DNA from: Macrostomum lignano
Taxonomy: Eukaryota
Assembly (NCBI GenBank): GCA_002269645.1
Contig: NIVC01002506.1
Location: 102,265 to 166,264, forward strand
Direction of reading: 5' to 3'
Length of the DNA: 64,000 nucleotides
The translations under genes were made by a program, and so were the position numbers. The stretch's first letter is position 1. Each line of letters starts with the position of its first letter. This document shows, in pieces, positions 34,591-63,777 of this stretch. The notes below the pieces were generated by a model. The model did not search any database, was not told the DNA's origin, and saw only the letters and a program-made list of their open reading frames with translations.

Positions 34591-35319
34591 TTATTACTCA
34601 TAGGCCAAAATAAAAACCATTTGGCGTCATTCTAGCGTCCCCCAACGGGGGGCTTAAATTGCTAGTCCATATACTAAAAATGGTCTGTTGGTATGTGTGT
34701 GATCGATTTTAGCAAAAACGGCTCAACCAATTTTATTCGAACTTGCACCATTCGATCAGAAATTTTTCCGTGACGGTACATGCATCGTGGCTAAGAAATT
34801 GCTCGATGCTAAAGGGATTAAATATTCGAAAAACATGCTTTTTTGCAAAGGTCAAGCAGCTATTTCGACTTGAAACGCACTGTAAAAATGCTAGAGAAAA
34901 AACTGACTGGTTGAATTCTGATTCTGAAATAGATTGCATCACAATACACTTTATTTATCGTCTGTGTACTGGCTGAATTTGACACTCAATTGAATTGCGT
35001 CACAGCTTTGAGTGTGAAAGTATAGTGCAGTACTGAATTTATATTACGTAACCATATTGTTAGCTTTCATAGACACTGGTACTGACTTGCCTAAGAAATT
35101 GATTATGTCATAACTGCTTCGCGTGACTTTTTACTCTACCTGACTTGGTGTGAGTGTTGAATTATATAAGTGGTACAAATTCACTGATAACTTCGATGAG
35201 AGCTAGCCTAGAGCTGAGCAGACCAGACTGCTAATGCAGTGACCTGGGTTCGAATCTAAGTAGTAGTGTAAAATTTTTTATTAAAAGCTTTTATTAAAGG
35301 ACTAAATAAAAACACTTAG

Positions 35320-37320: not shown

Positions 37321-37729
37321 AGCTTGGCTACATGTATAGGATTATTTCTATCCAGGGATGCTTGCTATTTAGGGATTCTTGCTATGTGCAGGATGCTTGC
37401 TATCTGGAAGGATGCTTCTACATTATCTGGGGTATGCTTGCTATCTGCAAGATGCTTGCTATCTGCAAGATGCTTGCTATCTGCAGATGCTTGCTATCTG
37501 CAGATGCTTGCTATCTGGGTGGATGCTTGCTAGGAGTATTAGGGGATGCTTGCTACTGGGGGGATGCTTGCTGTCTTGGGAATATTTTCTATTTAGGGGT
37601 AATGACTAAAATTCATGAGAGCTAGCCTAGAGGTAAACAGACTAAACTGCTAAATGCAGGGACGATGGTTCGAATTTTTAGAGAGTAGAGTTTTTTTAAT
37701 TAAAGCTTTTTAACGCCAAGACAAAAAAA

Positions 37730-39830: not shown

Positions 39831-40776
39831 CTCATATAAAAACTAATGAAAGTGTGTCATTTAAAAAATTAAGAAGCATCATGGAAGAATAAAAGAAGCG
39901 TAACGTAAAAATCAAAAGAAGCGTCATGTCAGACATGAAACAAGTGTCATAAAAATTAAATGAAGCTATAGTGCTGTGCTGGGGAGAATCACTGAGACGT
40001 CAAGGCTCACAGAGAATAACTGAGATTACAGGGGGGTTTCTGAGATGTTAAAGCAAAAGTCAGAAGCTACTTCAAAGTACATGTACTTTACTTAAGTTTT
40101 TTATTGCATTCTTTGTTGGCTTGCCACGGTGGGGGGGCGCTGATAGAAGAAGAGTCATGTAAAAATAAAAGGAGCACTATGTGTACATAAAATAAAAGTC
40201 ATGTCAAAGTTAAAAGATTCATTTGGGAATTGCTATGATGTCAAAGCTTGGAGGGAATCGTTATAGTGCTGTGATTCTTAAAGAAGGAATCACTTAAATG
40301 CCAAGGCTTAGGGAAGAAGAATTGCTGTGATTTCAAGGCTTTAGGTTGGGTAAAAGTTAGGTTTACGTCAGGTTTGGGTTGAGGGTTAGATTTTAGCGTG
40401 TTTCAAGGTTAACAGGGGATTTTTTAGATTTCAAGGTTTATGGGGGGCATCGCTGACATGTCAAGGCTTACGAGGGGAATCTATCTATCTATCTATCTAT
40501 AGCTGAGATGTCAAGGCTCACGGGGGAATAAATGAGATGTCAAGGCTAATGTCAGAAGCTACATGTAGTTTATAGGAAAAAAGTTATTACATTATTTGTT
40601 GGCTCCTCACAGGAGGGATCGCTGATAGAAAAAGCGTAATGTAAAAAAAAGAAGCTTCATGTCGAAGTTAAGAGATTCATTTGGGAATCCCTACGATGTC
40701 GAGGCTTGCAGGGAATCGCTTTAATGCTGTAGTAGTGCTATAGACTCTTAAAGAGAATTACTGAAATTTCAATGCT

Positions 40777-43049: not shown

Positions 43050-44380
43050 CTCAGTTACTCAGCAATGCCCCAAACCCCCAGTGCCCCAGCATTCCTTGCA
43101 ATGACTCAACCTTCAGTTCCTCAGCATTCCCCGCAATGACCCAACCTTCAGTTCCTCAGCATTCCCCGCAATGATACAGCCATCAGTTCCTCGATCAGCA
43201 TTCCCCGCAATGACCCAACCTTCAGTTCCTCAGCATTCCCCGCAATGATACAGCCATCAGTTCCTCGATCAGCATTCCCTGCAATGACTCAACCTTCAGT
43301 TCCTTAGCATTCCCCGTAATGACCCGACTCTCAGTTCCTCAGCATTCCCCGCAATGACCCAAACTCTCAGTTCCTCAGCATTCCCCGCAATGACCCAACT
43401 CTCAGTTCCTCAGCATTCCCCGCAATGGCCCAAACTCTCAGTTCCTCAGCATTCCCCGCAATGACCCAACTCTCAGTTCCTCAGCATTCCCCGCAATGGC
43501 CCAAACTCTCAGTTCCTCAGCATTCCCCGCAATGACCCAACTCTCAGTTCCTCAGCATTCCCCGCAATGGCCCAAACTCTCAGTTCCTCAGCATTCCCCG
43601 CAATGACCCAACTCTCAGTTCCTCAGAATTCAACGCTGTGACTCAACCTTCAGTTCCTCAGCATTCCCCGCAATGACCCGACTCTCAGTTCCTCAGCATT
43701 CCCCGCTGTGACCCAACTCTCAGTTCCTCAGAATTCCCCGCTGTGACCCAACTCTCAGTTCCTCAGAATTTCCCGCTGTGACCCAACTCTCAGTTCCTCA
43801 GAATTCCCCGCTGTGACCCAACCCTCAGTTCCTCAGAATTTCCCGCAATGACCCAACTCTCAGTTCCTCAGCATTCCCCGCAATGGCCCAAACTCTCAGT
43901 TCCTCAGCATTCCCCGCAATGACCCAACTCTCAGTTCCTCAGCATTCCCCGCAATGGCCCAAACTCTCAGTTCCTCAGCATTCCCCGCAATGACCCAACT
44001 CTCAGTTCCTCAGAATTCAACGCTGTGACTCAACCTTCAGTTCCTCAGCATTCCCCGCAATGACCCGACTCTCAGTTCCTCAGCATTCCCCGCTGTGACC
44101 CAACTCTCAGTTCCTCAGAATTCCCCGCTGTGACCCAACTCTCAGTTCCTCAGAATTTCCCGCTGTGACCCAACTCTCAGTTCCTCAGAATTCCCCGCTG
44201 TGACCCAACCCTCAGTTCCTCAGAATTTCCCGCAATGACCCAACTCTCAGTTCCTCAGCATTCCCCACAGTGACCCAACTCTCAGTTCCTCAGCATTCCC
44301 CGCAATGACCCAACTCTCAGTTCCTCAGCATTCCCCGCAATGACCCAACTCTCAGTTCCTCAGAATTCAACGCTGTGACC
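43050..44380. repeat. 35-36-bp tandem repeat
   Basis: Unit ctcagttcctcagcattccccgcaatgacccaact, ~37 copies. Confidence 0.95.
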
Positions 44381-44916
44381 CAAGACCAAATTAACAAAAC
44401 AGGAACTAAGAAGAGCAATTAATAGAATCATTATCACGATTTTTTATTAAAAAAAGTTGTCAAAACGCATTGCACCGATGTATATTGAATAATGAGTCGT
44501 AAATTTAGCAGACAAAAATTTTCGAAATTGCTTTACTGAGAAAAACGAATAGAGTTAAACGGAAGGATTTAACAAAATAAAGAAGGAATTTCTTCTTTGG
44601 AAGAATATTAGACTCAGCTGGCGATTTCTCAGCCTGTAAATATTAGCAATAAATAATTGAATACAAAACCATTTCACGATTAAATACTGACTGACCGCAT
44701 GCATCTCTGTCGAATGTTTTTAACAAACAAAAGTCTGCGTAAGTTATCAAATACGATTCATAATGATAAATGAGTAAATCTGGATTAAACTTTAACATCG
44801 CATGCAAAAAAACGTTTATTGCACTTTTGCAAACTGATATTCAATTATCCACCAACCACTTGACTATCAGGATTATTGCACACTACACTCAGTAAGTCAG
44901 TAATAGACAGGCCTCT

Positions 44917-46970
44917 TTACCGGCACATTCTCATGGTCATGTCCTTCTGCAATCAAGACCGCATATGTTTGTTTCGTTTAATTTACTGGATAGCAGGATA
45001 AGTGCAGATAGCTCCGCCTGTCAGTCAAACATGAGGACTCACCAACGGCTCCAGTTCCTTCTTGTCCACCAGAGCGAACTCGTTCACAAAGTAGAAAAAG
45101 TGCTTGTAGCAGGTGTTCACGTGAGCTTCCTGAAATATCATTGTTGTTGAAAGTTCAATAAAGTACGTTTCAAACGATGTCAAACGTGAGCACGGTGGTT
45201 TGTACGCTAGCACGCATCCACACGGAGTGTTCAACGGCCTTGACTTTCACACAGGCGGAAATCACACGACAAACCCCCAGGCCAATTGATGCGCACGAGG
45301 CCCAAATTAATGTGGCTGAGCTTTTAGGTAAAAGTGTCAACAGTTAACACAGTTAGTGAGGTAACGAACTGCCCTGGGTGGGGTTTGAGGCGCCACTCCC
45401 TAGTGTCATGCAGCTTGGGATGGCCTGCACAACTTGTCAATGAAGGCAAAGCTTGATACCAGATGTCCGAAATTGAACGCCCAAGTACTCACGGCGCCAA
45501 CAGACACCAGGTGCTCAAAGTGGTGAATATAGACGTGAACAAAGACTCGAAATAAGCGAGTGAAAATCTTCTTAACGCTGGCCAAGTAGGTCTTGGGAAA
45601 CGGCCGGCTGGAGTCGGTGGGGAAAAGTTCCTCGTCGCTGATCTGCGTCTCAACCCAGTCCATGAGCAGGTGGATGTACTCCCTGGCAGGCAGGGAGGTC
45701 GGCTTCTTGTACTGGCCCTTGTCAGCCCACTGGTACTCGTACTTGGAGCCGCCGCTCATCTTGGGGCAGCTGACCTCCGTGCACTCCTCCGCCACTGTGC
45801 CGTAGATCAGATTCACCCGGTTGTAGAAGTCCACAGCGTGCACTGCAAGCCAATCGTTGAGATCCTCGCCCTGCGGCAGCTGCACCGCAGTTTTCAGATC
45901 GATGCCGGCGCTGAGAGACGCCATAGCGTTCTTGTGCAGCTGGTGGCGAAGTGTGCCCTCCTTGTACTTCTTCTGGGGCTTGAAGGTCTATTGGTTTTAT
46001 TTGGAATTGTTGCAGCTGTATTTGGTTTTGCATGCTGATGAGATAGGACATTAAAGTATCAAATTAGAACTTAAACAATAAAAATCATTTATTATCCTTA
46101 TGCTATCTATATAAACCATAGATAGAAGATCTAATGTAGATGTTAATATTATTAATTAGAATGAAGTAATTTGAACTTTTTAAAAATAAGTGTACAAATT
46201 TCTACATTCAAATTGAAACTTCTAATATAGTCTTTTGAAAGTTTTAGAAAATAGGTTTTATAAACATGCTATATTAGAACCAATTTATACATATGCATGT
46301 TATTCAAAATTTTCAAAATCAATGACAAAATATAAGTAGCTTAACAAATCTAAAATAATAGTAATACTGATGACAATATTGCACTTTATATAGATATAAA
46401 ACCTAAGTAAAGTAGCACTATAACCAATCAATACTATAACTATATCACTATACTATATCAATAATATATCAATATGTTATTAAGCTCAGTCTACTTCTGC
46501 AAAAATCTTGTTTCTAAAGTTAAAAATTTTAATAAAAATCTAGATCAATAAAGCTAAGCTAAGCAAGTTTATATCTACAAATCTTACACAGTTAACCAGT
46601 TAAAGGCTGCATAAAGGTAAAAAGCATATTAGTATCAATGCATTGTCTAAAAACTCAGACTTGGTAAAAAGTCTATTTGAAGTAATTTAAATATAAAATA
46701 GCATAGCTATACTTAAGACAAATTTCTGAGCCTATATGTACTTTTGTTAAAAGATACTTGACACAAATAGTTGCAATTTATAAATGAAGCTGATCATGCC
46801 CATTCGTTAAGATCAAGCAAATTAAATAAAATTAATTGCACACTGCATCTTACTGAAAGATGGTATAAATATAATTAATTTAAAAAATTCAAGAAAGCCA
46901 TGAGCAAAACAGCATTCAATTTTCATACCTTTTCTCGATTAAAGAACTCTTTAAATCCTCCAAATGACAT
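44917..46970 (-). CDS. MOB3: MOB kinase activator 3 (MOB3 family), complete, 217 aa
   Basis: Exons 46929-46970 ([14 protein letters not shown]), 45493-45987, 45043-45129 and 44917-44946 (KDMTMRMCR*), all phase 0. Contains [38 protein letters not shown] and [11 protein letters not shown]. The C-terminal MTMRMC resembles vertebrate MOB3 MTARMC. Confidence 0.95.
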
Positions 46971-48189
46971 TTTAAAAAGATAATAGGTCACTGCTATCAG
47001 GTGACGCAAAGCTAAGTTGCTAATTATGAGTTGAAGATATGTCAAAGTTCGGTCGGTCAGTCAGTCAGTCAGTCGACAAGTTTAGACTCAGGTTTCTTAG
47101 AAAACTGAAATTAAAACTCGCCACTTCCTCAATTATCGCCTTTTTTAAAATTTCACGACACATTGCAACTGAGAGTCATGAACATTTTTTTCTAAAAAGA
47201 AACTGCTGTTTAGGAGAATTTCGTTAAATATATTTTTGCTTTTACTACAACTGTTGCATCTCTCTGGATTATCATTTGGGCTATGGATTACATATCCGGT
47301 GTGATTATGTATTATTTAGATTATCGGTTTATAAGAACTGACATTGAAAGGCTTGTCCTTTTCGAGGTAAGTCCTGCCCGATCTCTACATGATATTTACG
47401 GAATCCGGTTATAGTTGTACTGCATAGAATACATATATACAGTTCATACGTTGTAAAACCACGCGTACAACAAAACGAATTTTCCTGTCTACATGTAAAT
47501 TTTTATGCGCACAATCAGTGCTAAAATTTGAAAAACTTGTTTTTCGATCAAAGCTATGGCTACGTGTACATGTGAATCTTTTTAAACAGGGTCTTTCAGC
47601 ATATAATTCACCATAGTTGTATGTCAGCATGAAGAGTAAATATCAAAACAACTTTTTTTACTCTTTTACCACGTACTTTTTATGAAATTTTCTCCTTCTC
47701 GTTAAAATCATTAGCTTATCAAATTCGCGACTCTTGAGCTGCACCAATCTTGCTGAAATCACAAGCGCCATACACATGAATTTTCTCGACTTGAGCTCGC
47801 CAACCATGACATGAGCTCGCGAAGGATCACTATACAGTGCTACTAAACAGCCAAAGATAAGATTAAAAAGTAAAAAACTGCTGTGCTTTGAAAAAAATCA
47901 AGCATAAAATTTAGCTAGCTGAAGGGCAAGATAATTAAGTGCAATAGTCTAGGCTTCGTACATGCAGTGTCGTAGGCAGAAGTCTCACTTTTGGACAGTA
48001 TATTTATCTGATCCGTTGCTTTGCTGGGCTAATTTAGAGGCTTGAAGGAGAGAAACTCTCTTCTGAATTCACTTTCTAGAGCATTCTAGAAAATACTTTT
48101 GCCTTTTCAATTTCTAAATCGCCCAGAAGCGATTGCAAATAATCAGCCTAAATCACTGAGGTCAGAAGACCCGCACTCAGCAAATTGCC

Positions 48190-51100
48190 ATGCCATCCAG
48201 CAGAGGTGGCGGCATCAGCCTGCTGGGCCTGCCGCTTCTGCTGCTGCTCGCTGCGGCAGCTGTGAGGCCGGCAGAGTCCGTGTTCTCCTTCAAGGAGGGC
48301 AAGCAGTACATGTACGATGTGGAGACGCACACGAAAACCAAGGACATCGGTGACCTGTTCGTCTCAGGCCAGGTAGAAATATTTGTACAATCGCTTAGTG
48401 TATGCACCTGTAGGGGTTTTAAAAACCAACCTAACGGCTTTTATTACCGTTAATATTTACCTAGACAGGTAATAATGCATGTAGCTTAATTTTTATCACC
48501 CATTGACTATATTGATTTAAATTTATTCAGATTAAAGAGAAAGTTAAGAAATTTTGATCAATTGCAGTTAAAAAAATTTTAATATCTTAAGGTTGGTTTG
48601 TGGCCGAGTCTCGGGTTTGGTTCATGGCCGAAGCTCGGGCTTGGTTTATGGCCGAAGCTCGGGGTTGGTTTATGACCGAGTCTCGGGCTTGGTTTATGGC
48701 CGAAGCTTGGGGTTGGTTTGTGGCCGAGTCTCGGGTTTGGTTCATGGCCGAAGCTCGGGCTTGGTTTATGGCCGAAGCTCGGGGTTGGTTTATGACCGAG
48801 TCTCGGGCTTGGTTTATGGCCAAATCTCGGGGTTGGTTTATGGCCGAAGCTCGGGGTTGATTTATGCCCGAAGCTCGGGATTGGGCTCGGGGTTGGTTTA
48901 TGGCCGAAGCTCGGGGTTGGTTTATGGCCGAGTCTCGGGTTTGGTTTATGGCCGAGTCTCGGGATTGGTTTATGGCCGAAGCTCGGGGTTGGTTTTGGAC
49001 CGAATCTCGGGGTTGGTTTATGACCGAGTCTCGGGCTTGGTTTATGGCCGAGTCTCGGGTTTGGTTTATGGCCGAGTCTCGGGTTTGGTTTATGGCCGAG
49101 TCTCGGGTTTGGTTTATGGCCGAGTCTCGGGCTTGGTTTATGGCCAGATCTCGGGGTTGGTTTATGACCGAATCTCGGGGTTGGTTAATGGCCGAAGCTC
49201 GGGCTTGGTTTATGGCCAAAGCTCGGGGTTGGTTTATGCCCGAAGCTCGGGGTTGGGCTCGGGGTTGGTTTATGGCCAAAGCTAGGAGTTGGTTTATGGC
49301 CAAATCTCGGGGTTGGTTTATGGCCGAAGCTCGGGGTTGGTTTATGGCCGAAGCTCGGGGTTGGTTTATGGCCAAAGCTCGGGGTTGGTTTATGCCCGAA
49401 GCTCGGGGTTGGTTTATGGCCAAATCTCGGGGTTGGTTTACGGCCGAATCTCAAGGTTGGTTTATGGCCGAGTCTCGGGGTTGGTTTATGGCCGAGTCTT
49501 GGGGTTGGTTTATGGCCGAGTCTTGGGGTTGGTTGATGGCCGAGTCTTGAGGTTGATTGATGGCCGAGTTTCGGGGTTGGTTGATGGCCGAGTCATGGGG
49601 TTGGTTGATGGCCGAGTCTTTGCTCCGATCAGAAATGTTCCAGCATCGATATGGCTGAATCAATGAACTCGCAACTTCGCTGCTTTTATCTCATTTTCTT
49701 GAATGTCATTGCGTCAGCTGTTTCAACCCTAACATCGATCCCCGGTTTTCAGTTTTCCATCCAGCTGCAAGGCAAGGAGCCGGATGGATCTCAGCACCTG
49801 GCCCTGACGCTGACAAAGCTGCACGCCAGGAACGGCCGAGGCCAGACTGCGGGTCAGGGCAGCGACGTCAAGCTGGATGGCTGGTTCAGCTTCCACCTGG
49901 ACCCAGCCGGCCGGGTCAGCCATGTCCGGTATCCGCATGACGAGACTGCGTTCTTGGCCACTGTGAAGAAGGCCATGGTCACAGCGCTTCTTGGACACGA
50001 TGACGTAAGCCCGAAAATTTCAGTTTCCATGCATATATTTCCTCTCACCGCCAAAATTTCATTGAATAACATTTCAAAGCTGCTTTATGTAAACCCAATT
50101 CAGGAGTACAAGTTCCACAACACTCACGAGTGGAGCACCAAGAATCGCACCATCGGTCGGTATCACACCGAGATTTCAAAGACCAGACGCGGAGTTCATG
50201 GGAACAACGTGCACAGAAATGTCACCCATGTAAGCTTTCACACTTTTATGACAATTCTTTGCAGCACAGGCGTACACACGATTTGTACTGGAGGAGAAGG
50301 CGAAACTCTTGGGGTGTCTTGAGTGGCACCCCTGTCTCTTGATTGGAGCAACTGTCTTTTGGTGGGCGACCCTGTCTCTTAGATGGGTGCCCCTGTTTCT
50401 TGGTGGCTGACACTGTCTCTTAGGTGGGTGCTACTGTCTCTTGGTGGCTGAATTTGTCTCTTAGGTGGGTGCCCCTGTCTCTTGGTGGCTGAATTTGTCT
50501 CTTAGGTGGGTGCTACTGTCTCTTGGTGGCTGACACTGTCTCTTAGGTGGGTGCTACTGTCTCTTGGTGGCTGACACTGTCTCTTAGGTGGGTGCTACTG
50601 TCTCTTGGTGGCTGAATTTGTCTCTTAGGTGGGTGCTACTGTCTCTTGGTGGCTGAATTTGTCTCTTAGGTGGGTGCCCCTGTCTCTTGGTGGCTGAATT
50701 TGTCTCTTAGGTGGGTGCTACTGTCTCTTGGTGGCTGACACTGTCTCTTAGGTGGGTGCTACTGTCTCTTGGTGGCTGACATTGTCTCTTAGGTGGGTGC
50801 TACTGTCTCTTGGTGGCTGAATTTGTCTCTTAGGTGGGTGCTACTGTCTCTTGGTGGGTGCTCCTGTCTCTTGGTGGCTGAATTTGTCTCTTGGTGGCTG
50901 AATTTGTCTCTTAGGTGGGTGCTACTGTCTCTTGGTGGCTGAATTTGTCTCTTGGTGGCTGAATTTGTCTCTTAGGTGGGTGCTCCTGTCTCTTGGTGGC
51001 TGAATTTGTCTCTTAGGTGGGTGCTACTGTCTCTTGGTGGCTGAATTTGTCTCTTGGTGGCTGAATTTGTCTCTTAGGTGGGTGCTCCTGTCTCTTGGTG

Positions 51101-54100
51101 GCTGACACTGTCTCTTGGTGGCTGAATTTGTCTCTTAGGTGGGTGCTCCTGTCTCTTGGTGGCTGAATTTGTCTCTTAGGTGGGTGCTCCTGTCTCTTGG
51201 TGGCTGAATTTGTCTCTTAGGTGGGTGCTACTGTCTCTTGGTGGCTGAATTTGTCTCTTAGGTGGGTGCTCCTGTCTCTTGGTGGCTGAATTTGTCTCTT
51301 GGTGGCTGAATTTGTCTCTTAGGTGGGTGCTACTGTCTCTTGGTAGCTGAATTTGTCTCTTGGTGGCTGAATTTGTCTCTTAGGTGGGTGCTCCTGTCTC
51401 TTGGTGGCTGAATTTGTCTCTTAGGTGGGTGCTACTGTCTCTTGGTGGCTGAATTTGTCTCTTGGTGGCTGAATTTGTCTCTTAGGTGGGTGCTCCTGTC
51501 TCTTGGTGGCTGACACTGTCTCTTGGTGGCTGAATTTGTCTCTTAGGTGGGTGCTCCTGTCTCTTGGTGGCTGAATTTGTCTCTTAGGTGGGTGCTCCTG
51601 TCTCTTGGTGGCTGAATTTGTCTCTTAGGTGGGTGCTACTGTCTCTTGGTGGCTGAATTTGTCTCTTAGGTGGGTGCTCCTGTCTCTTGGTGGCTGACAC
51701 TGTCTCTTGGTGGCTGAATTTGTCTCTTAGGTGGGTGCTCCTGTCTCTTGGTGGCTGAATTTGTCTCTTAGGTGGGTGCTCCTGTCTCTTGGTGGCTGAA
51801 TTTGTCTCTTAGGTGGGTGCTACTGTCTCTTGGTGGCTGAATTTGTCTCTTAGGTGGGTGCTCCTGTCTCTTGGTGGCTGACACTGTCTCTTGGTGGCTG
51901 AATTTGTCTCTTAGGTGGGTGCTCCTGTCTCTTGGTGGCTGAATTTGTCTCTTAGGTGGGTGCTACTGTCGCTTGGTGGCTGAATTTGTCTCTTAGGTGG
52001 GTGCTCCTGTCTCTTGGTGGCTGACACTGTCTCTTGGTGGCTGAATTTGTCTCTTAGGTGGGTGCTCCTGTCTCTTGGTGGCTGAATTTGTCTCTTAGGT
52101 GGGTGCTCCTGTCTCTTGGTGGCTGAATTTGTCTCTTAGGTGGGTGCTACTGTCTCTTGGTGGCTGAATTTGTCTCTTAGGTGGGTGCTCCTGTCTCTTG
52201 GTGGCTGAATTTGTCTCTTGGTGGCTGAATTTGTCTCTTAGGTGGGTGCTACTGTCTCTTGGTAGCTGAATTTGTCTCTTGGTGGCTGAATTTGTCTCTT
52301 AGGTGGGTGCTCCTGTCTCTTGGTGGCTGAATTTGTCTCTTAGGTGGGTGCTACTGTCTCTTGGTGGCTGAATTTGTCTCTTGGTGGCTGAATTTGTCTC
52401 TTAGGTGGGTGCTCCTGTCTCTTGGTGGCTGACACTGTCTCTTGGTGGCTGAATTTGTCTCTTAGGTGGGTGCTCCTGTCTCTTGGTGGCTGAATTTGTC
52501 TCTTAGGTGGGTGCTCCTGTCTCTTGGTGGCTGAATTTGTCTCTTAGGTGGGTGCTACTGTCTCTTGGTGGCTGAATTTGTCTCTTAGGTGGGTGCTCCT
52601 GTCTCTTGGTGGCTGACACTGTCTCTTGGTGGCTGAATTTGTCTCTTAGGTGGGTGCTCCTGTCTCTTGGTGGCTGAATTTGTCTCTTAGGTGGGTGCTC
52701 CTGTCTCTTGGTGGCTGAATTTGTCTCTTAGGTGGGTGCTACTGTCTCTTGGTGGCTGAATTTGTCTCTTAGGTGGGTGCTCCTGTCTCTTGGTGGGCGC
52801 CCCTGTCTTTTAAGTCGACCCTGCCTCTTGATTTCCCTGTCTCTTGTAGCTACCCCCGTCTTTTGGTACCCTATGGCTTGGAAGGTATGCATATGCCTGT
52901 AAAAGATGCGGCTAGAATGGAGCTTCTTTCCATCATCAAGATTGGAAATGCGCTTTTGCATTTTGGAGAAGCGTATTGCAGTTGGGCGCCATTTTTGGCG
53001 TGCGACTGGAGGCTGGACGATCTTCCAGTCGGCCCGAATGCCCTCCTGCTATAAAGGCTACTGTCATTCTCTAATTATTCCAGACCATGCACTACAATCA
53101 CGTCACACGTCTGCCTGACAGAACTTTCATACACGATGAGATCCACTTCTTTAATGATCAACCTGAAGGGTGAGTTCAGCGAAGCGTCTATCTGCCTCAT
53201 GAGCATCCTCATACATGTAAACAGGTACTCTAAAATAAGGAACGTTTTTCTAATCTCAATATTTCAGCTTCGATTCGGGCGTCAAGGTCAGGAAGGGCCC
53301 ACGGGTGGTGATGGACAGGGAGCACGAAGATCCGACAAGTGTGTCCAGGGTGACCACCACGGCAAAATCGGAGTTCACGCTATCTGAAGTTCGAGACGCT
53401 TCACCGATCAAACAGAGACCAGCAAAGCTGGCGTCTGAGAATATTAACCAGACCAGGGTGAGCTCATGGAGTTGCCAGTTAGCGTTTTGAGCATCGCAGT
53501 ACATGCCAACTCACTATCCGTGTTTCAGCTGCATGAGGTGTTCCAGTCCGACTACGATTTACGAGACGTTCGGCGCGGCATCGACTCCAACCTCACCTGT
53601 ATAGCCACCGACACTGCGGAATGTGAGTTTGCTTAGCTAAATTATTTGTCAAGTTGAAAAGCTTTTGCTTGACTTTATTTTTGTCTTACGCCACTAAATT
53701 TTAGCCAAATCCGACGCTATCGACTGCTACCACAACTTGGTTCAAATATTGCAAGGACTGTCTCAGCGAGAGCTGAATGAAATTGCTTCCATGTACTTGG
53801 ACCGGCCGTATGGCAATATGTAAGCTCGCGCTTTTATTGGGATACCTGCTGTTGCTTTTGAGATCAACCGCAGCGAGCACACATGTAACTTGCTGCTTGA
53901 TCTACCTACATTTCAGCACAAAGGATCTGGAGAAGAAGAGGTTCCTGGCCATGCTGGATGCAGTCTGCAGTGTTGGCTCCGTTGCATCTGACTTGATCAT
54001 CAATAAACTGGTTCTCAAGTCCAGGAGCAGACATCCGGAGCTCGTCCAGAGGGTGCTCGTGTTTCTGGCTACAAGAAAGAACGCCCCAGCAAACGTGAGC

Positions 54101-55163
54101 TGAAGAATTTGGAATGCCGTATCGAAATCGTAGAATACGGTAGTCCGCTTAAGTAGGGCTTTGAACTCGTGACTCGTGTTGCAAAATGCGTTATCAAAAA
54201 GCAAAATTTTCAATTTTAGCATTAAACTTCGCAATATTTCTCCTTCTGGATTTTCGAATTGCACATGAGCCAAGTATTGTTCGTAGGAAAAAATTGGAAG
54301 AGCATAATATTGCAGAGTGCAGAGTTCACAATTACATTTGTTTTTTAGTTTCGTGTTGTGATTTATTATTACCAGATATTGTTATTACCTTCTACTTAAG
54401 TAGTTCATGACTCAAAGAGTACCAACATCCGGGTGCCATGATAAAAATGATGCTGTTTAAAAATGGTTTTAGGCCCTGGTGAATACTCTGGTCACGTTTG
54501 TGTTCAATCCCGAGGGTCAGCCCGATATCAACGACCCGGACACTTACCACCGCTGCGTGCTTGCCCTCGGCACCGTCTGTCGCCTGATGCAAAGCTACGG
54601 CAACCAGCAGCAGAAGGCCATGGCTCAGAGCATAGTTAGCCAGCTGGAAAAATTCACCGAAGTCTTCGGTGAGTAAAAATATCAGAAATTGCTTTCATAA
54701 AGAGCTTCAAAATTGACAATTTAAAAGCCTCGCTTTCAGATCCGTACCATCACCGGTCAAAGAGGGACGTCATGGACGATGCAACATTCGAAAGGTTCAT
54801 ATTCTTGAAGTCTTCGCTGATTGACAGTTTAGGAAATGCCGCTTTTGAGAGTTCATTTGAGGTCATCCAGTCCTACTCTAACGAGTCGTCGGCACCCACT
54901 CTGTGGAAGCGTTCTGGACTGCATTCTATGCGCAAATTCGAGACTATTGAGGTTTGTCTTTGTAGTAAACAGTCTGATTGCTCTCCTCAAGCGGGACTTT
55001 TATTTTTGTTTTTTGCATCCTGTTTTCAGGCAGCGTCAACAATCCTCACTGCCGCACTAACTGACTCTGACGAGCACGTTCGATACGAGGCCAGCCTGAT
55101 GTACGAGGCTCATCCGTCAAAAACTAAGGATATTGTCACCATGCATCGCGAATTTGTTGAAGG
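48190..55163 (+). CDS. Signal peptide plus vitellogenin-N/lipoprotein-N (LLTP)-like region of the giant gene
   Basis: Hydrophobic leader [15 protein letters not shown], then [17 protein letters not shown]. Helical-domain hallmarks [37 protein letters not shown] and DEHVRYEA. Confidence 0.65.
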
Positions 55164-58100
55164 GTGCGTTCAAAACGAGTTCTTTAACCCTATATGTAAT
55201 TTGTTTAAATCAATAATTATTTATTTTGCTATACATTCGCGCTCCGTGTTGTAGAATTGATAACGGAACTCTGCTGATGTCGCACAATATCTCCAAGCGC
55301 AGCGTGCAAGGCGTGCTCGAGAAAATGTGGAAGGGAATCCATGTGAAGCTGGCGGCTCCAGGCGTCAACTGGCAAAAGATGATCGGCAGCACTAAAATCG
55401 GCGGCTCGTTCGGAATGACCGCCTTGAATGAGCTCATTGTGAAGCTGGGTACGCTGACCCTTGCTGATTCTTATATACTGTATATAATAGAAACAATCAG
55501 ATGCTACTTATTCCAAATATTCCATTATTCCAAATGCAGCCTTGATCGAGGGTCAGCTTACGGTAAACGTGCACGACGAGGTTTTCGCTAGAGGACATCT
55601 GGGCGTAATTGGCATTCACATTGACTTCTTTCTGGCCAGAGTCTGCTTTCGAGGCGGTGTTGAGTACAAGATCAGCATTCTGAAGGAGTTCGGAGTCAAC
55701 AGCGTGCAGGATTTGGTGAAGCTTTACGACCGGACGATTGGAGCGCTCTACAAAGGTGTCAAGGACGCAATTAACGGATTTCGAAAGCTCTTTGAACCTT
55801 CAAATCCCAACCAGGTGTTTAGCATAACTAAAAACTTGCGCAAGGAGTTTCGAAGGCTGCCATACGTGGTGTCAGATCTCGCCAAATCGATTGTACAAGC
55901 GGTGGATATCCTGGCCGAGGTCGACCCGCTTGAGTTGCCGTCTCACGTGAGGCCGCTGTTTGCGGTACTGAAGAAGATGGCCACTCTGGCTAACGATATC
56001 AAAGCCGATGTTACAGGATTCTATTACGTGAGTTCATAGCACTTTGAGTGAAATCAGTTATTCGACTTTCAAATGTATAGTTTAAAGTGTGATAAGCTTC
56101 TGATCCGAAATGCAATAATTAGACCCTACACGACGCGATCGAGAACCAAATCCCGATGTCTGCAAAGCAAACTAAGGAGGGTTTGGATCTGCTGGTGAAA
56201 ATATTCCCAAGGATTTTCCGCTCCCCGAAGGAGGCCATCATGAACGCATTCAAGTCGTTCTTCCAAATCGGAATGGGGGTGAACGGGTTTCTCGACGCCA
56301 AAAATCGAACTCTTGAGGCGTGTTTCTTTTTGAAAGGTGAGCAATTTGTTCTGCCGTATCTATAGAAGTCGCACCTAAAACATAAAAAACATTTCTTAAC
56401 GAATACTTCACAATGCTTGTTTCAGAGGAGAAGCCCTACTGGTGGAATCTGACCGATCACTATCGCAACTTGAAGGCGGAATTCGCCGAGGCCCTGCGCC
56501 ACATGGAGAGAGGCCGTCGGGCCGTCTTAGCGCTGGAGGGCTCGCAGCAGAACGGCACGAGACCGTTTAGCGCAATGTCGGACTCAGTGAGACACCTGTT
56601 TTCTGTTTACCTGCCACTTTTCACGATCAAATTTCCGCTATAGAAGCCCTGGACCAGGCTTGTTATCTGCCTCGCTTATAGCTATTTCAGCGATCTGCGC
56701 CTGGTGCAGAATTTGCTGCTTTTCCAAGAAAATCTGAATTCCTAATATAGAACAGAATTCTTATCAGCTGCGAAGTGGGGAAAGTAGAAGCTCCGGTTGG
56801 CATAGTCAAAAGTTTACAGCTATAATGTCTACGACTATCTTATAGTTTAGTACCGAGCCTTGTAGCTCACAGAAAATTCAGTCGCTAAATGCATTAGCAA
56901 AGAATGACTTTGAGAATTTCTGCTTGTCAAATGCAGTATATTTAAGTGCAACCTCAAGTTCGTTTTATTTTTCTACAAAAAAGCTCAAGCCTTTCGCTCC
57001 ACTGCCTGTGATGCTTCTGAGTCTTTAAAAACTAACTAACAGCGTGTTTTGATTGTGTTGTTGTTGCTGTTGGTAACTTTGTTTTCAAAGTAATTTACTG
57101 GTACGACCGACAGTCCCCACATCGTTCATTTGATCGTCTACATTTTCAGTAATAAATAAATTACTGAGGTCTATACATGTCAGTGACATTTGGTTTAAAA
57201 AACAAAATTTTTCATTCAGGAAACAATGAAGCTAGTGGGCCTCCTAAAGGATGTCCAGGACCTGTTGATGGAACCGTTGAGCGGCTTCCGTGGAGCCTTC
57301 GGCCCACTTGAAAACCAGATCCAAGGAATTCTGCAGATAATTCGCGGCTTCAAGGAGGCCTACCAAGGAGCCAAGGAGAGCTGGAAGAGGATCAGGAGCA
57401 TAGCGGAAGCCATCATGGGTCCGAGGGCGCACTCCGAGTTTCAAAGGACTTACCGGCTCGCCGGGAAAGGTTGCAAATCCGATGGTTTCTATCCATCAGA
57501 CGCTGACAAACTGTGGAATCATCCTGGCGTGGATCTGGCCGTGGAACCTGGCGAAAAGGTCGTTGTGCCGTTCAAAGGCGAGTACTACCGAGGTCCCGAG
57601 GGTTCTAACCAGCTCGTGATTGTTCCGAAAGGATTCAGCATGGAAAAGTTTCACTTCATCTTGGAGAACGTGAAGTTCGAGATGGATGACGGTCGATTTG
57701 AAGCCAGCGACTTGCCAGTCTTCGATATGGAGCAAGGAAACAGCCAGCCAACTGAGGGCTTGGAGCTGAGCGCTGGGGACAAGCTCGGCGTGACTGGCTC
57801 GACACCCAAGTGCGAAAACCACATTCACCTATCCGCCAGGGCTGGCCCTGGTCGCTACCTGGATTCCAGCAAGTACCTTGAGCCTCGAGTGATGAAAATG
57901 CCAAAGTGGGAGCAGAAATGCGACGACTACAAGCTGGTGATACTTGATAACGTGATCGCCGAAGGGGCGATCGTGGGATTAAAAGGCCGGAAGGATGAGG
58001 ACACCAGCCCTGAAAGAGAAGCAACCGAGGAATCCGTGGAGCCGCTTGAAACTGACGAAGTCGATCTCTTTTCCAACGTGGAAGCTGACTCAGTTCGCCT

Positions 58101-61100
58101 GCCGCGCAGCTCCATTCTCGGCAACGTGGGCAAAGCGGTAACCAGCATTCTCGACTTTCCAAAAAAGCTGGGCGTCGACAAAATCTTTGATAGGTTCAGC
58201 TTGCGCCGCCTGAGACTCGCCTACGTCGTTGCCTTTCTAGAGGCTCCGGCGATTCAAAATCATTTCGAAAAGACCAGGGAGAAAATGGATAAACTACTGC
58301 TGACGATCAAGGATGTACTGGAAGATCAGCCGTGCCAGAGCCCCTACCTGATGTCTGAGGAAGAGCTGCGTAACGAGCTCGTTAAGAAAGGCTTTGGCAA
58401 ATCGGAGGTGGAAGTCATGCCAAAGGCCAGTCTTATCGATAGGATGAAGCAGAGTGATTCCCGTGAGTAACGCTTTCTCTAGAATTCAATATTTTAGGGA
58501 ATGCAGACGGTAGCTCATACTTCATCTCATTTTATTAACATCACAGGCTGTCCGCTTCTGCAGCTGTCGCTGCCGAGACCAGTTTACTGTCAGTTCGACA
58601 AGAGCTGCCTCTCGGTGGAGTGCTGCATTGACCTCAAGGTGAAGGTGTTCCGCAAAGCGGCAAAACTCTGGGCCAGGCTGGACCCGTGCGGCAGCAGCAA
58701 GAAGCTGGAGTTCGGGCTCAAGATGAAGCATGTGAAGACCGTAGTGTACACAATCGATTTCAACAGATTTTTTCCTGAAGGTAACCTTGTTAGTTTCCCG
58801 ATACATAAAAATAACTAGCAGTACTCTATCAATGATTAGCTTTTCCTAAACAAAGATTTTCGCCAATCTTACTTCAGATTTCGAAGAGAAAGAAATCTGG
58901 CTGCCAGACGCTCTGCAGTTCCTTAAAGTGCTGAAAATGAAGCTGCGGCTGTCGTACCAGTTCGCCAAGTCGGAGGAAGCCCTGATGTTCAGCCTTCGCC
59001 TGTCCGCGTGCTCAACCAGCTCGAGCTGCGAGGTGGACATACAGGTACTCCAGGAGCTCGTCCTGCCGCTGCCAATCTGCAAAGATGGCTTGGTCACCTG
59101 GCCGAAGATGAACTGGCAGCAGATGCTGAACAAGAACCACCTGAAGTCCCTGCTTCAAAAGACTTCTACGTCGGTCATCAACGCCATGATGCAGAAGTGG
59201 TGGGAAGAGTTGCTGCAGACGATGGGTCTGGGGGACTTTGCTGACGTCTTCAATGCCAAGGCCTGCACCCTGCCGAACAAGGTCTCCAACGAGGTGCTGC
59301 TAGAGGGGCTGACGGAGCGTGGGGTGCAGATTTCCGACCCTAGCAATAAAACGGTGCTGGTGCAACTGGCGGAACTGCACTTCCGCAAGTGTCGCAACGG
59401 GCCGCTGCAACTGGAGTTGCCGCAACTTCCTGGAGCACTGAGAAGTCGCGTCTTTTGCCAGGTGTCCCCGAACTGCACCAAGTTCGAGTGCTGCATGGGA
59501 CTGGAGGCTTCCATCAGAGGTTTTGAGATTGCAAAGTACTTGAAAGGTGAGTGCTAATTTTCAATAGTATTTCTGAAAGAATAGTCCCTTCTGACTAATT
59601 ACCGACGAATATTACAGGCTGGGCAAAAATGGACGAGTGTACTTTAACATTCAGCTTCGGTTTCAACTCGCTGACATTCAACAAGGTTCTGTTTGCGATT
59701 CCATACGGCAAGGAATTTCTACAAAATGTTGGAGCCCTGAAGCTTAAGTGAGTTAATATTCGAGCTTACATCTTCGTTTAGCAGGTTATTGAGTTCTTGC
59801 ATCGACTCATAAACTATTGCGATGAACTCGCATTCCGAATCCCAGGTACCGATTTAACGAGAATCCAACCAGCAATGAGGCGCCGCTGTTCAGCCTGGAG
59901 CTGGCGATCTGCCCGGGTTCGTCTTCATGCCTACTGGACTACATCAGTGTGCTCAATCGCGTGCCCGTGCCGGTGCCTTTCTGCGGCAACGACTGGCACC
60001 GAATCCTGCCGGGCAACACCGACAAGCTCGAGGATTTCCTCAAAGAGCTCGGAACTTCCGCCAGCCAGGCGGCGCTGGATAAGGCGGCGGAGATCCTGCT
60101 CACCAGGACGGGACTGAACAGGATCATCTCCAAGGGCCGGTGCGCCAGACAGAGCAATTTCACCGCCTGTCCGCACGTGCGCCTGCCGCAGCTGCCGTCC
60201 AATTTGCAGTGCCGAGTTGCAGACAACTGCATGGGCCTCGAGTGCTGTCTGGACTTTGCCTTCAAAACTAGCAAACTCGATCTCAGCTTTCTCAACTACC
60301 ACGCCAAGGCCTGGATTCTGCTGGACACGTGCGAGTACACCAGCTCGATTGGCATTGGTGCGCTGCACTTCAACACATCCCTGTTGGAAGCTCATTGGGG
60401 CCAGAAAAAGTCCCAGTGGATTGGCAACAAGGCCGTTCGATTGGAGTGAGTCAAATTGAGATTTGATGTAAATAGTAATATTAATTGACTGCGCCTGCCC
60501 TAATGGGCAGATGTGCAACCGACAGCTCAGCCGCAGCTATTGCGCGGCGCATCTAAAGGCTGCGTACGGCTGCTTTTGGTCCAAGAACTGGGGGTCGCCA
60601 CACACACCCTCAATTACCACCTAATAAGGCTAAATTGGAATCTCAGCTCGGGTCTGATCCTGCAATTAACGCCCTTGAGAGCCAAACACCAAGGCACAGT
60701 GAAGTGTACATGCTTAACGATAAATAAATTTAGGGCCACTGTAAACTCCCGTGTGAGTGTGTGCCTGTGCGTTTGACTGCGTAGCTCGTACGTATCCGCA
60801 CGCCCTGCTCAGGGGAGGGCAAGTAATGCCTTTCACCGGCTGCTTTTGGTCCAAGAACTGGGGGTCGCCACACACACCCTCAGTTACCACCTCAGGTAAT
60901 GCCGGTACCCATTTTACAGCTGAGTGAACTGAATCAATGCAGAGTTGTCTTGCTCAAGGACACAAATTGTTCCAGTGGGATTTTGAATCGAACCCCTGAC
61001 TTTTAATTCGTGAGTTTGACGCTCTAACTACCAGGCTACAACCCCTTAATGTGTTCTCCATTAGTAACTAATTCAGTTCGATGCTTTAATTGAAACAATT

Positions 61101-63777
61101 TTCAGTTGGTTTGTTTATCATTTAATTCAGTAAATCAAGTTTTACTTTGCTGAAAATTGATGTTGTCCCTTTCTCAGAGCGAAAATACGTCTGACCGTAA
61201 TTTGTTTTTCAGCTACTCCGTGGATCGAGTTGGCAAGGACTACGTGAAGCTAGATTTCGACCTGTCCGTGTGCTTCGCTGAAGGAGATTGCGACTTCACA
61301 GTCAAGCTGCTGAAGGACACGGTGGTGCCGCAGCCATTCTGCCATCGGAACTTCACCGGCGCTCTGCCAGGCGGCTCGCTTGGCGACTTCGCCAAACTGC
61401 TCGGCAACGAGGCCTCGGAGGCGGCGCTGCAGACAGCCTTTGAGGCGGTGGTGCGAAGGTTCGGCCTGCAGAAGGCCTTCTTTAATCCTCCAGAGTGCGC
61501 ATTGCCGTCAAACACATTTAATAATGGCTGGGACAGTCGTGAGTCTTCGCTGTGAACTGACATTTACCTCATGACATAGTAAATCATTAAGCTTCTTTAA
61601 TCATAATTAATTACGCCTGCCCCAATGGGCAGATGTGCAACTGACAGCTCAGTCGCAGTCATTGCGCGGCACATCTGAAGGCTGTGCACGGCTGTTCAGT
61701 CCAATGACTGGGGGGTCACACACTCTTAATTACCCCAGCTAATGCTGGCACCCATTTTACAGCTGAGTGAACTGAAGCAATGCATAGTTAAGTGTCTTGC
61801 TCAAGGACACAGATTGTTCCAGTGGGATCGGAAATCGAACCCCCGAGTCGTGAGTCCGACACATTAACCACTATTACCAACAACGCATTATTCCACTGCT
61901 AACTTACACAGTAAGAAGTTAATTTACTTTTAGAAGTCACTACGCTCGTACAAGAGTCAGATGTCTATTGATGCTAAATTCTGTTCAGAATAAATTGAAT
62001 GTCATTTCCAGCTATGGAAAGTTCACTAGAAGCACTTTATCCTCAAACTCGATTCCACAGGTTGCCCCAGGGTGTTCTACCTGCCACGCCTGCCCAGCCA
62101 GGTCCGCTGCCACCTGAACGAGTTCTGCATGGGCGTCACCTGCTGCGCCGAGCTGGACTTTAAAGTGTTTAAACCGACAGCGCTGATGTGGCTGATTCTG
62201 GATCCGTGCGAGTACCGGTTCTCCATTGGTTTCAATAACCTGCACTACAATCAGACTCTGTTCTATTATGAGTGGGGCCAAGTGGAGACTTTCAATATTG
62301 GCTCGCCTCTGCAGATTATGTAAGCTGTTGTATTTGAACAGATAGTGCATGCAAGCTCCACAATCGGGTGACAAACGTTGACGCCTTTGGTGCTGGCGCC
62401 TTTGGTGCTGGCGCCTTTGGTGCTGGCGCCTTTGGTGCTGGCGCCTTTGGTGCTGGCGCCTTTGGTGCTGGCGCCTTTGGTGCTGGCGCCTTTGGTGCTG
62501 GCGCCTTTGGTGCTGGCGCCTTTGGTGCTGGCGCCTTTGGTGCTGGCGCCCCAAACTAAAAGCGCTACCTAAGACCCTGAAAATCAGATGCTGTCTGAAG
62601 TGGATATCTGTGTTGCTATGCTATTTCAACGAAATGTGAAATCAAGGCTACTGAGATTATTCGATAATTAACGGAAATCGCGTCACGAATTTAAATAAGC
62701 TATTTCCTTCAGAAGTAAGTAACCTGGCACATTAACCTTCAATTGCAGCTACTCAATTCGCAAGGACAGTGATCGGCGCTTGTTCCTCGTGACCTGAAGC
62801 TCAGCCTCACCATCGACTCATTCCGCACCGACTTTGTGCTGCTTGAGAACTCCATGGTGCCGCAAGTGGGCTGCAACATGAACGCTTCTATAAGCTTGCC
62901 AGGAGGCGGCCAGGTGAAGGACTTTATCAGGCACCTAGCGGAGACAGGTGTGCAGAAGATCACGGACGAAGCCGTGCAGGCTGTGCTCAGACACCTGGGG
63001 ATTGGAGACCTCATTGACTTTGAGTCGAAATGCGAGAATAGAACTGGATTTTTCAACCGTGAGAACATCACTACGAGCGTACTGATTTTTTATACATGAA
63101 CTCAATAAATTCATGTCAGTATAAACCAAAATTCCAGACTGCCCGCTGTTCAAGACGTCGGCAAACGCGCCATCCAGATTTGTCCCGGCACTTACTGCGA
63201 CCTCTCATCCGACTGCCGCATGCTGAGCTGCTGCGCGGAGCTCAACCTGCTCATCGCTCGGAAGGCCTTCGCCCTGGCCGTTTCTGTTGACCCGTGTGAC
63301 TACAAGCTGCTGGTTCGCTTTGAGAAGATGACGCTGAGCAAGTCTTTGTTCCGATACGACTGGGGCCGTAGAGAGTCCTTCGACCTCGGCAAAGTCATTT
63401 TCGTCAGGTTGGATTTTTTCTTTGTCTCTTCAGAAGCACAATTCGGAGCTGACATAAAAACTGATGTGTCTCTCTGCCCCGCAGTTTCAAGATCGATAGG
63501 GATCCGGTCAAGAAACTCTACTTCGTGGACCTTGAGCTGCAGGTTAAAATCGAGGGTGACACTTCGACACCCGTGGCCTTCCTCAACAACTTCGCCATCC
63601 CGATTCCGATCTGCAATCCCAATGCATCCATCAGCCTGCCAGGCGGCTCCATCGGAGACTTCGTCAAGGAGTTGGGCGGAAGCATCACGGAGAGCGCGAT
63701 CGGAGCTGTGCTGCGGCACCTCCGGCTTGAAGGCATCATCGCCACGCATTCCAACTGCTCGCCGGAGAGCCCAAAGG
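48190..63777 (+). CDS. Giant secreted multidomain protein: signal peptide, vitellogenin/LLTP-like N-terminal domain, M23/LECT2-like domain, tandem Cys-rich repeats; partial, continues beyond the window
   Basis: Exons 48190-48372, 49753-50004, 50104-50229, 50265-? (junction unresolved), 53084-53169, 53268-53457, 53529-53622, 53705-53819, 53917-54094, 54473-54668, 54740-54951, 55030-55163, 55255-55448, 55540-56027, 56123-56336, 56426-56586, 57220-58462, 58547-58780, 58878-59546, 59618-59747, 59846-60445, 61213-61538, 62061-62319, 62749-63058, 63138-63407, 63485-63777. Phases are consistent except for two exons that are each 1 nt short. Confidence 0.8.
48588..49620. repeat. 24-bp intronic tandem repeat
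   Basis: Unit tggccgaagctcggggttggttta in intron 1 of the giant gene. Confidence 0.95.
50330..52805. repeat. Intronic 20+21-bp dimeric (41-bp) tandem repeat
   Basis: gtctcttggtggctgaattt alternating with gtctcttaggtgggtgct(a/c)ct. Confidence 0.95.
57220..58462 (+). CDS. Large exon with an M23-peptidase/LECT2-like Zn-binding domain
   Basis: HxxxD (NHPGVDL, His at 57520) and HxH (NHIHL, 57820-57828), with VVPFKG and V..GDKLG-type elements between them. Confidence 0.75.
60478..61040 (-). mobile_element. tRNA-derived CORE-like SINE (copy 2) with internal insert
   Basis: Minus strand: gtagcctggtagttagagcgtc...ggttcgattc...gtgtccttgagcaagaca...cagttcactcagctgtaaaatgggtacc. Interrupted by 214 bp flanked by a 56-bp direct repeat. 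Confidence 0.8.
61603..61880 (-). mobile_element. tRNA-derived CORE-like SINE (copy 3, most complete)
   Basis: A-box tagtggttaatg, B-box ggttcgatttcc, CORE-like gtgtccttgagcaagacacttaac...cactcagctgtaaaatggg and an AT-rich tail. Confidence 0.85.
62383..62550. repeat. Perfect 15-bp intronic tandem repeat x11
   Basis: tttggtgctggcgcc x11 inside intron 62320-62748. Confidence 0.95.

Follow-up and report, generated by a model that had tools for sequence, protein, structure and literature searches.

We analysed a 64,000-nucleotide (nt) stretch of the genome of the flatworm Macrostomum lignano (contig NIVC01002506.1 of assembly GCA_002269645.1, positions 102,265 to 166,264 of the forward strand; hereafter the window), which ends inside a giant plus-strand gene for a predicted secreted protein. 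The spliced frame of this gene opens with the ATG at 48190, 10 codons downstream of an in-frame TGA (48157-48159). The exon model was built by hand: the plus strand from 47.5 kb to the window end was translated in three frames, and each boundary was checked base by base. Exons 1-22 (48190-62319) use AG acceptors and GT donors throughout, with matching phases, and together supply 6,284 coding bases, i.e., 2,094 codons with no stop. Three further exons (62749-63058, 63138-63407 and 63485-63777) extend a pattern of Cys-rich repeats, the final in-window donor lies at 63777, and the gene runs past the window end. The interval is the 5′ part, with at least 25 exons, of one protein-coding gene. Its introns mainly measure 70-130 nt, with two large exceptions, 48373-49752 and 50230-53083, both filled with minisatellites. 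Two additional exons were considered and rejected, a small one at about 56689-56702, whose phase and donor are unusable, and one after 50229, where phases are inconsistent and a minisatellite begins at 50317.

The 2,094-residue product of exons 1-22 aligns end to end with single proteins of distant animals. BLASTP aligned its amino acids (aa) 32-2094 with aa 40-2038 of the amphioxus protein XP_078664147 (29.7% identity, 894 bits, E=0) and aa 12-2088 with aa 8-2080 of KAK3589057 from the unionid mussel Potamilus streckersoni (25.4% identity, 645 bits, E=0). Agreement of the gene model with about 2,100 colinear columns of amphioxus and mussel proteins is, on these alignments, far beyond chance. 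The orthologues XP_078664147.1 and XP_019616817.1 (Branchiostoma) and KAK3589057.1 (named “Vitellogenin domain-containing protein”) show the same order of parts from end to end at 25-30% identity, namely putative signal peptide, Vitellogenin_N domain, furin loop, amphipathic helices, M23 module, SAP-like motif and repeats. Because the model is colinear with single amphioxus and mussel proteins, the fusion of a large lipid transfer protein (LLTP) part with an M23 and repeat part represents one conserved gene and not a mis-join. The predicted product is a single secreted-type polypeptide whose domain order is conserved between a flatworm, molluscs and a cephalochordate. An earlier reading of the same DNA, made from its letters alone (the original prediction), had proposed one spliced plus-strand frame over 48190-63777, open at the window end, that fuses in a single gene an LLTP N-terminal module, a long amphipathic-helix stretch, an M23/LECT2-type fold with HxxxD and HxH motifs and tandem Cys repeats, and had suspected a broad, unstudied invertebrate family. 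The frame was recovered with the same coordinates, as 22 canonical exons followed by three more, and every named part, the fusion and the family hold up in the evidence given below, but the prediction had missed a furin site, two SAP-like motifs and the breakage of the frame in the fifth repeat.

The N-terminal part of the protein is encoded by exons 1-13. Exon 1 (48190-48372; donor CAG/gtagaa) carries the ATG and a signal-peptide-like segment (aa 1-29, at 48190-48276) and begins the putative LLTP barrel. Read by eye, the segment has one Arg in the n-region and a 17-residue Leu/Ala core followed by RPAES; the orthologues have comparable hydrophobic N-termini. The protein then opens with the usual F-x-x-G-x-x-Y-x-Y pattern, and exons 2 (49753-50004) and 3 (50104-50229) continue the LLTP N-terminal beta region, the latter aligning to the WEYVTNETGYEG block of the orthologues. 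Exon 4 (53084-53169), which follows the minisatellite-bearing intron 50230-53083, and exon 5 (53268-53457) lead into exon 6 (53529-53622), in which the match to Pfam Vitellogenin_N (PF01347) starts at aa 290 (about 53559). The match (38.5 bits, E=7.4e-10, cut-off 24) runs through the helical domain in exons 7 (53705-53819), 8 (53917-54094) and 9 (54473-54668) to aa 542 (about 54945) in exon 10 (54740-54951), and covers profile columns 296-525, which are the helical part of the family. Two relatives match the same profile, P0003 with 34 bits and P0155 with 44.3 bits over columns 77-551 of 590, and the window protein aligns with P0155 through the N-terminal beta (barrel) region, where the profile match of P0155 starts at column 77. 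Exon 11 (55030-55163) encodes a HEAT-like motif at a place where the orthologues match Pfam HEAT_2, and exon 12 (55255-55448) encodes the short beta region following the helical domain, which ends in exon 13 (55540-56027) with VNVHDE...CFRGG; this beta-type sequence comprises only about 110 aa. Pfam searches of the window protein, P0003, P0155 and P0152 returned no match to DUF1943, DUF1081 or VWD. MTP has no VWD, and this domain is therefore not universal in the LLTP superfamily. As judged from these profile matches and alignments, the N-terminal part is a divergent, shortened large lipid transfer module composed of a putative barrel, a helical superhelix and a short beta stretch.

A predicted furin-type site lies in a loop of the helical domain. 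It is the string R479-S-K-R482 (54754-54765), encoded in exon 10 together with an LGNA motif, and only one other RX[KR]R string occurs in the 2,094 aa. It aligns with RQRR in amphioxus and RQKR in Potamilus, inside the shared block “DPW..RQ(K/R)RS” (DPWLERQRRS versus DPWVYRQKRS), so that the putative RX(K/R)R site is conserved in this loop among the aligned sequences. Apolipophorin-II/I and insect vitellogenins have a furin site at a like place.

Downstream of the LLTP module, from aa 705 (about 55692, within exon 13) to aa 1010, the protein consists of predicted amphipathic helices, encoded by the rest of exon 13, exons 14 (56123-56336) and 15 (56426-56586) and the beginning of exon 16. The mean helical hydrophobic moment of aa 705-1010 is 0.41, versus 0.23 ± 0.02 for shuffled sequences (z=8.1), and it exceeds 0.45 in 42% of the 18-residue windows. 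No other segment departs as clearly from its shuffles, the next-highest being the LLTP helical domain with z=2.2. The share of the stretch that falls in exon 16 forms long helices of low confidence in an AlphaFold2 (AF2) model.

In exon 16 (57220-58462, 414 aa), the amphipathic helices end at about 57426 and are followed by an M23/LytM-fold module, then an acidic linker, then the first SAP-like motif. The module, at aa ~1026-1164 (57472-57888), is not a stand-alone protein but sits within a polypeptide of more than 2,000 aa, and carries the zinc-binding motifs H1042-PGV-D1046 (HxxxD; H1042 at 57520-57522, D1046 at 57532-57534) and H1142-I-H1144 (HxH; 57820-57828). Its Pfam M23 (PF01551) score in the window protein, 16.6 bits, lies under the cut-off of 28.7, and the orthologues score 17-23 bits, while a paralogue, P0011, reaches 31.1 bits, above the cut-off and with the whole model covered. 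A phmmer search of the PDB with the exon alone gave no match, whereas a profile of five family members placed SpoIIQ at the top (E=7.5e-4), together with M23 peptidases, LECT2 (E=0.03) and TagE. In a Foldseek search of the PDB with the AF2 model of exon 16, the top 50 matches are all LytM/M23 structures, the best being 2b13_A (E=8e-7, target-normalised TM-score 0.65), and target-normalised TM-scores reach 0.66 among these matches. Because the AF2 model of the exon is poor, the Foldseek matches need support from sequence. The five-member profile was therefore also compared by hhalign with human LECT2 (91.9% probability, E=7e-7, 28% identity over 98 columns, extending to the LECT2 C-terminus) and with the LytM catalytic domain (87.7% probability), the sequences of both having been verified residue for residue against the PDB chains. 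Taken together, four converging independent lines, i.e., the family profile, the Pfam match of P0011, the Foldseek matches and hhalign, support an M23/LytM fold for this predicted module.

The conservation pattern of the module speaks to its function. Among the five aligned family members the position of the first zinc-ligand His reads H/D/Y/R/H, while the Asp and the HIH are invariant, and the catalytic His260 of LytM aligns, in a low-confidence stretch, to Asp or Asn (LytM “MHNNRL”, window protein “MDDGRF”, family “pN(d/s)”). This third catalytic His, on which active enzymes depend, appears to be absent from the window protein. Since the first zinc-ligand His is not conserved and the His260 position is Asp/Asn, the conserved function of the module is unlikely to be peptide hydrolysis. 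A binding module is thus more likely than a hydrolase, and the pattern would be better matched by a binding domain stabilised by zinc, of the kind seen in LECT2 and degenerate LytM factors. The functional view of the original prediction was a lipoprotein scaffold with a domain that recognises bacterial cell walls, possibly a yolk, mucus or adhesive immune protein. An active or peptidoglycan-binding cell-wall domain of this kind, which would give a lipoprotein in mucus, yolk or body fluid an antibacterial or pattern-recognition role, is unlikely and less likely than the binding role. The window protein does keep the three zinc ligands and the first His of HxH (H1042, D1046, H1142 and H1144), the closest folds found by Foldseek include the true hydrolases LytM and lysostaphin, and fish and amphioxus vitellogenins bind lipopolysaccharide, lipoteichoic acid and peptidoglycan. 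However, D, Y or R stands in place of the first zinc-ligand His in three of the five family members, LytM His260 is met by Asp/Asn in the low-confidence stretch, the best sequence match in the PDB is the non-catalytic SpoIIQ, and LECT2, which is not known to be a peptidase, is a slightly better hhalign match than LytM.

The rest of the predicted protein is built from SAP-like motifs and Cys-rich repeats. The orthologues match Pfam SAP (PF02037) with 31.8-38.8 bits (cut-off 23.9) at two positions, one closing the M23 exon and one inserted into repeat unit 1, and P0155 passes the cut-off at the first of these. In the window protein, the first copy is a SAP-like helix-turn-helix motif at 58339-58461 (...LIDRMKQ) and the second is an insert at aa 1563-1605 (about 59264-59392); neither has a Pfam match of its own, and their homology to the orthologues' SAP domains comes from alignment. 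The first copy contains a 4-aa insertion and is modelled by AF2 as a helix-turn-helix with a predicted local distance difference test score (pLDDT) of about 80. In the PDB search with the family profile, the SAP domain 1zrj appeared at E=0.15.

Each repeat unit comprises about 200 aa with 10 Cys and consists of three predicted elements: a beta hairpin containing two Cys and the motif “P-x-P-x-C”, a helical hairpin with the pattern “LPGGS-x-GDF...LG...AVLRHLGL”, and a five-stranded 6-Cys beta module, here termed the B module, with the pattern “CP...LP-x-LP....C.....C-x-G-x-x-CC ... DPC ... Y-x-WG”. The first B module (...DPC...) lies in exon 17 (58547-58780). Exon 18 (58878-59546) encodes the beta and helical hairpins of repeat unit 1, with the second SAP-like insert, and the start of B module 2, which exon 19 (59618-59747) completes. 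Exon 20 (59846-60445) holds a whole repeat unit of 199 aa with 10 Cys, exon 21 (61213-61538) the hairpin and helical part of repeat unit 3, and exon 22 (62061-62319), the last of the unbroken 2,094-codon frame, B module 4. They are followed by the hairpin and helices of repeat unit 4 in exon 23 (62749-63058), B module 5 in exon 24 (63138-63407), and the hairpin and helices of the next repeat unit in exon 25 (63485-63777; donor AGG/gtatta). The AF2 model of the exon 20 repeat, made with a 44-sequence alignment, has a mean pLDDT of 79, rising to about 90 in the B module. Foldseek found no fold match for this model: the best E-values were 0.86 in the PDB and 0.03 in BFVD, with TM-scores below 0.25. 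Pfam detected no recurrent family over the 44 repeat copies and no domain at all in P0001, a protein with 14 repeats. A borderline match of the repeat profile among PDB sequences, the plant protein RPP1 (7crb, E=0.004), found no support from Foldseek and was taken as chance. The 6-Cys beta module also occurs solo, in short database entries and once at the C-terminus of Mytilus galloprovincialis VDI22130 (P0064), a protein with WAP, SEA, M28 and DOMON domains. Because it is found both alone and in that protein, the module behaves as an independent extracellular domain. Collectively, the sequence searches and predicted models indicate that the 10-Cys repeat is a new domain for whose fold neither Pfam nor the PDB offers a counterpart.

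In the fifth repeat the reading frame is broken twice. In exon 23 there is a −1 frame break near 62775-62795, where the frame-1 reading reaches a TGA and the homologous continuation lies in frame 0; an alternative acceptor at 62804 keeps the frame but was rejected, because the first strand, whose alignment to the other repeats is good, would be lost. Exon 24 opens with CPLFKT in frame 1 and has its remainder in frame 0, with a second −1 break near 63150-63185. The frame survives skipping of exons 23 and 24, because exon 22 leaves “AT” and exon 25 supplies “T”. The coding length in the window is 2,388 codons with these two exons and 2,192 codons without them, and the original prediction of more than 2,400 aa was therefore slightly too high. 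Its count of at least five Cys-rich repeats likewise needs amending: tandem Cys repeats are there, but four of the Cys modules in the window are intact, a fifth is frame-broken, and of the following unit just the start is present; moreover, the unit is no mere cluster of Cys but the roughly 200-aa combination of beta hairpin, helical hairpin and 6-Cys beta module described above. It seems improbable that the gene as a whole no longer works, whether through decay of this copy, as a pseudogene or, the M. lignano genome being duplicated, as a non-functional homeologue. Two −1 breaks do occur over a span of about 400 coding bases, frames are also mixed in A0A1I8FPN1, the public M. lignano entry for the region, and the surrounding DNA is very rich in minisatellites. 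However, 2,094 consecutive codons over 22 exons are intact with canonical splice sites throughout, the furin loop, GVD, HIH and the Cys pattern are all kept, both breaks lie in one repeat unit whose two exons can be skipped without loss of frame, and assembly indels would explain the breaks equally well.

Relatives of the gene are widespread among invertebrates. Word-index protein searches with the M23 exon, the repeat alignment or the N-terminal 704 aa found none, and the family was recovered by an exhaustive profile search in which the profile was an alignment of the window's own repeat exons. This search retrieved 459 proteins at E≤0.001, of which 26 reach E≤1e-30, and its leaders are 1,500-5,000 aa long with up to 14 repeat matches. 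They come from bivalves (Potamilus, Sinanodonta, Mytilus, Mya and Argopecten), gastropods (Patella and Babylonia), the sea star Patiria, amphioxus and the flatworm M. lignano itself, and their database names are “uncharacterized” or “hypothetical”. The M. lignano entry A0A1I8FPN1 is a frame-mixing prediction that contains exact strings from the window exons and shows one more B module beyond the point where the window ends. In Branchiostoma belcheri KAI8518956 (P0002), about 2,500 aa more follow after 14 repeats, including a PAN/apple-like stretch and many units of about 100 aa; this tail may be the true C-terminus of the family or a fused neighbouring gene. The Sinanodonta woodiana protein KAL3862603 (P0152) has, at aa 4377-4399, a marginal match to Pfam Saposin B region-1 (26 bits, cut-off 25.2), which, if real, would give the family a second lipid-binding module. 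Two adhesive proteins of Macrostomum, ap1 and ap2, were considered and set aside as different proteins, with VWD, C8, TIL, EGF and TSP1 domains. Our literature search found no paper on this family or on any LLTP-M23 fusion; the family's sequences are public but unnamed, and its architecture and repeat domain are undescribed.

That two neighbouring genes were mis-joined here, an LLTP gene ending with exon 15 and an M23/repeat gene starting from the ATG at 57226, is highly improbable: the 633-nt intron between 56586 and 57220 does hold AATAAA-like strings, the ATG, at the only junction where a second gene could plausibly start, is in frame three codons into exon 16 and heads a listed 414-aa open reading frame, and the mussel entries P0011 and P0152 begin just upstream of the M23 region, but the exon 15/16 junction is in phase and within continuous alignment to single amphioxus (a RefSeq model) and Potamilus proteins, a protein from 57226 would lack a signal peptide despite dozens of disulfide-type cysteines, and P0011 and P0152 are most likely N-terminally truncated models, because P0152 carries a “partial” flag and each of the two still matches the final 70-120 columns of the LLTP-region profile.

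The DNA around the gene is dominated by tandem repeats. Long minisatellite arrays, whose units measure 23-35 nt, make up more than half of positions 1-48000, and related units of 23 and 24 nt recur at several places; examples of the arrays are 10501-12660, 13996-19184, 20837-29460, 30979-32403, 35319-37321, 37725-39929 and 43062-44383. The largest array in these first 48 kb has 364 copies of a 24-nt unit over 8.6 kb. Within the gene, introns contain 44 copies of a 24-nt unit at 48591-49619, about 60 copies of a 41-nt unit at 50352-52808, and, at 62382-62550, a perfect array of 11.3 copies of a 15-nt unit, 100% identical to one another, which suggests a very recent expansion. A dispersed element of about 130-150 nt, with copies 82-87% identical, occurs at 60476-60618, 60567-60622/60837-60892, 61598-61843 and, on the minus strand, 755-902, that is, in two introns of the giant gene and once near the window start. 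It looks like a short interspersed element (SINE) or a miniature inverted-repeat transposable element (MITE); an Rfam search over the whole window gave no match, and hence no tRNA or other RNA family in this element. The upstream neighbour, divergent from the giant gene, is a 193-codon exon of the Mob1/phocein family on the minus strand (45409-45987, Pfam 204 bits), separated from it by an AT-rich spacer of about 2.2 kb with about 30% GC. Also on the minus strand, open frames at 7989-9794 match RVT_1 (66 bits) and represent a fragment of a long interspersed element (LINE)-type retroelement in a GC-rich block, and an exon at 2872-3558 has a GPPGTGKS P-loop and a match to Pfam AAA_11, as in Upf1/ZNFX1-type helicases.

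We consider it probable that the giant gene encodes a secreted lipoprotein-like protein conserved across bilaterians, in which LLTP, LytM-fold, SAP and 10-Cys-repeat parts are combined and the M23 module is a non-hydrolytic binder. In such a model the protein would enter the endoplasmic reticulum, where the large lipid transfer module and the amphipathic helices would bind lipid or the lipid-water interface, as in apoB, apolipophorin and vitellogenin. Furin would cut after R482 to give two chains that may remain associated as in apolipophorin-II/I, and the product would leave the cell as a lipoprotein-like extracellular scaffold of very large size, stapled by disulfides. The M23 module, stabilised by zinc, would bind a peptide or protein ligand, comparable to LECT2, SpoIIQ, EnvC and NlpD, and the repeats would form an elongated multivalent stalk.

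Several points weigh against this model, each functional step of which is one that we infer. The Vitellogenin_N match of the window protein is limited to the helical part (aa 290-542), the barrel being supported via orthologue alignment only. DUF1943-type lipid-cavity sheets were not detected by Pfam in the window protein or its relatives, and a profile of the first ~940 residues, compared with PDB sequences, retrieved no lipovitellin, MTP or apoB but only artificial HEAT-like repeat proteins; without these sheets and without a sequence match to a solved LLTP, classical lipid loading is therefore uncertain. The AF2 model of the M23 exon has a mean pLDDT of only 47 overall and 55-75 in the domain. 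Moreover, the window protein keeps the H, the D and the HxH, so that zinc binding is fully plausible and some catalysis may be possible in this species. Finally, there are the two frame breaks in the fifth repeat, which could be assembly errors, decayed and skipped exons, or gene decay.

In animals, yolk formation, lipid transport and some innate immune functions depend on LLTPs, and their evolution is usually told as that of three families. It is possible, if doubtful, that the present family is a fourth deep LLTP branch beside apoB/apolipophorin, vitellogenin and MTP, ancestral to bilaterians, lost in vertebrates and probably in ecdysozoans, with a LytM module that is perhaps the sister or the source of LECT2. 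A conserved bilaterian protein that retains the LLTP entry module, but in which amphipathic helices, a LytM/LECT2-type domain, SAP motifs and a new repeat replace the classical lipid-cavity and VWD regions, would add a branch to the superfamily. It also provides the first invertebrate context for an animal M23 domain and a testable idea on the origin of LECT2, together with a new disulfide-rich extracellular domain for which Pfam has no model although databases contain more than 450 members. Macrostomum lignano is amenable to RNA interference, in situ hybridisation and transgenesis.

The orthologues of the window protein have 10-14 or more repeats, whereas the window shows five and part of a sixth before its end, and some orthologues are without the first zinc-ligand His that the window protein keeps. 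Like the LLTPs (vitellogenin, apolipophorin-II/I, apoB and MTP), the predicted protein is of secreted type, with an N-terminal Vitellogenin_N domain above the Pfam cut-off and a lipid-type amphipathic segment downstream, and it shares with apolipophorin-II/I and the insect vitellogenins a furin-type site in the helical domain; in contrast, an M23 module, SAP-like motifs and a new repeat make up its C-terminal two thirds, and we found none of these in any described LLTP. The M23 module resembles LECT2 (PDB 5B0H) in its predicted fold, in HxGVD and HxH, and in a shared “APFxG” and C-terminal “DPTxxL”, and like LECT2 it belongs to an animal protein of secreted type and is probably non-proteolytic. 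However, LECT2 is a stand-alone protein of about 133 aa, whereas the present domain forms part of a polypeptide exceeding 2,000 aa, and its copy in the window protein contains some 20-30 inserted residues. The module may be an ancestor or a sister of LECT2, or the likeness may reflect convergence on bacterial M23, LytM scoring almost as well. The degenerate bacterial LytM domains of SpoIIQ, EnvC, NlpD and DipM, all of which appear in the Foldseek list, offer a further parallel in having incomplete catalytic or zinc residues and a protein-binding use. Unlike the window protein, these are small bacterial proteins of the periplasm or forespore, yet it is one of them, SpoIIQ with its non-catalytic LytM domain, that is the best sequence match among solved structures.

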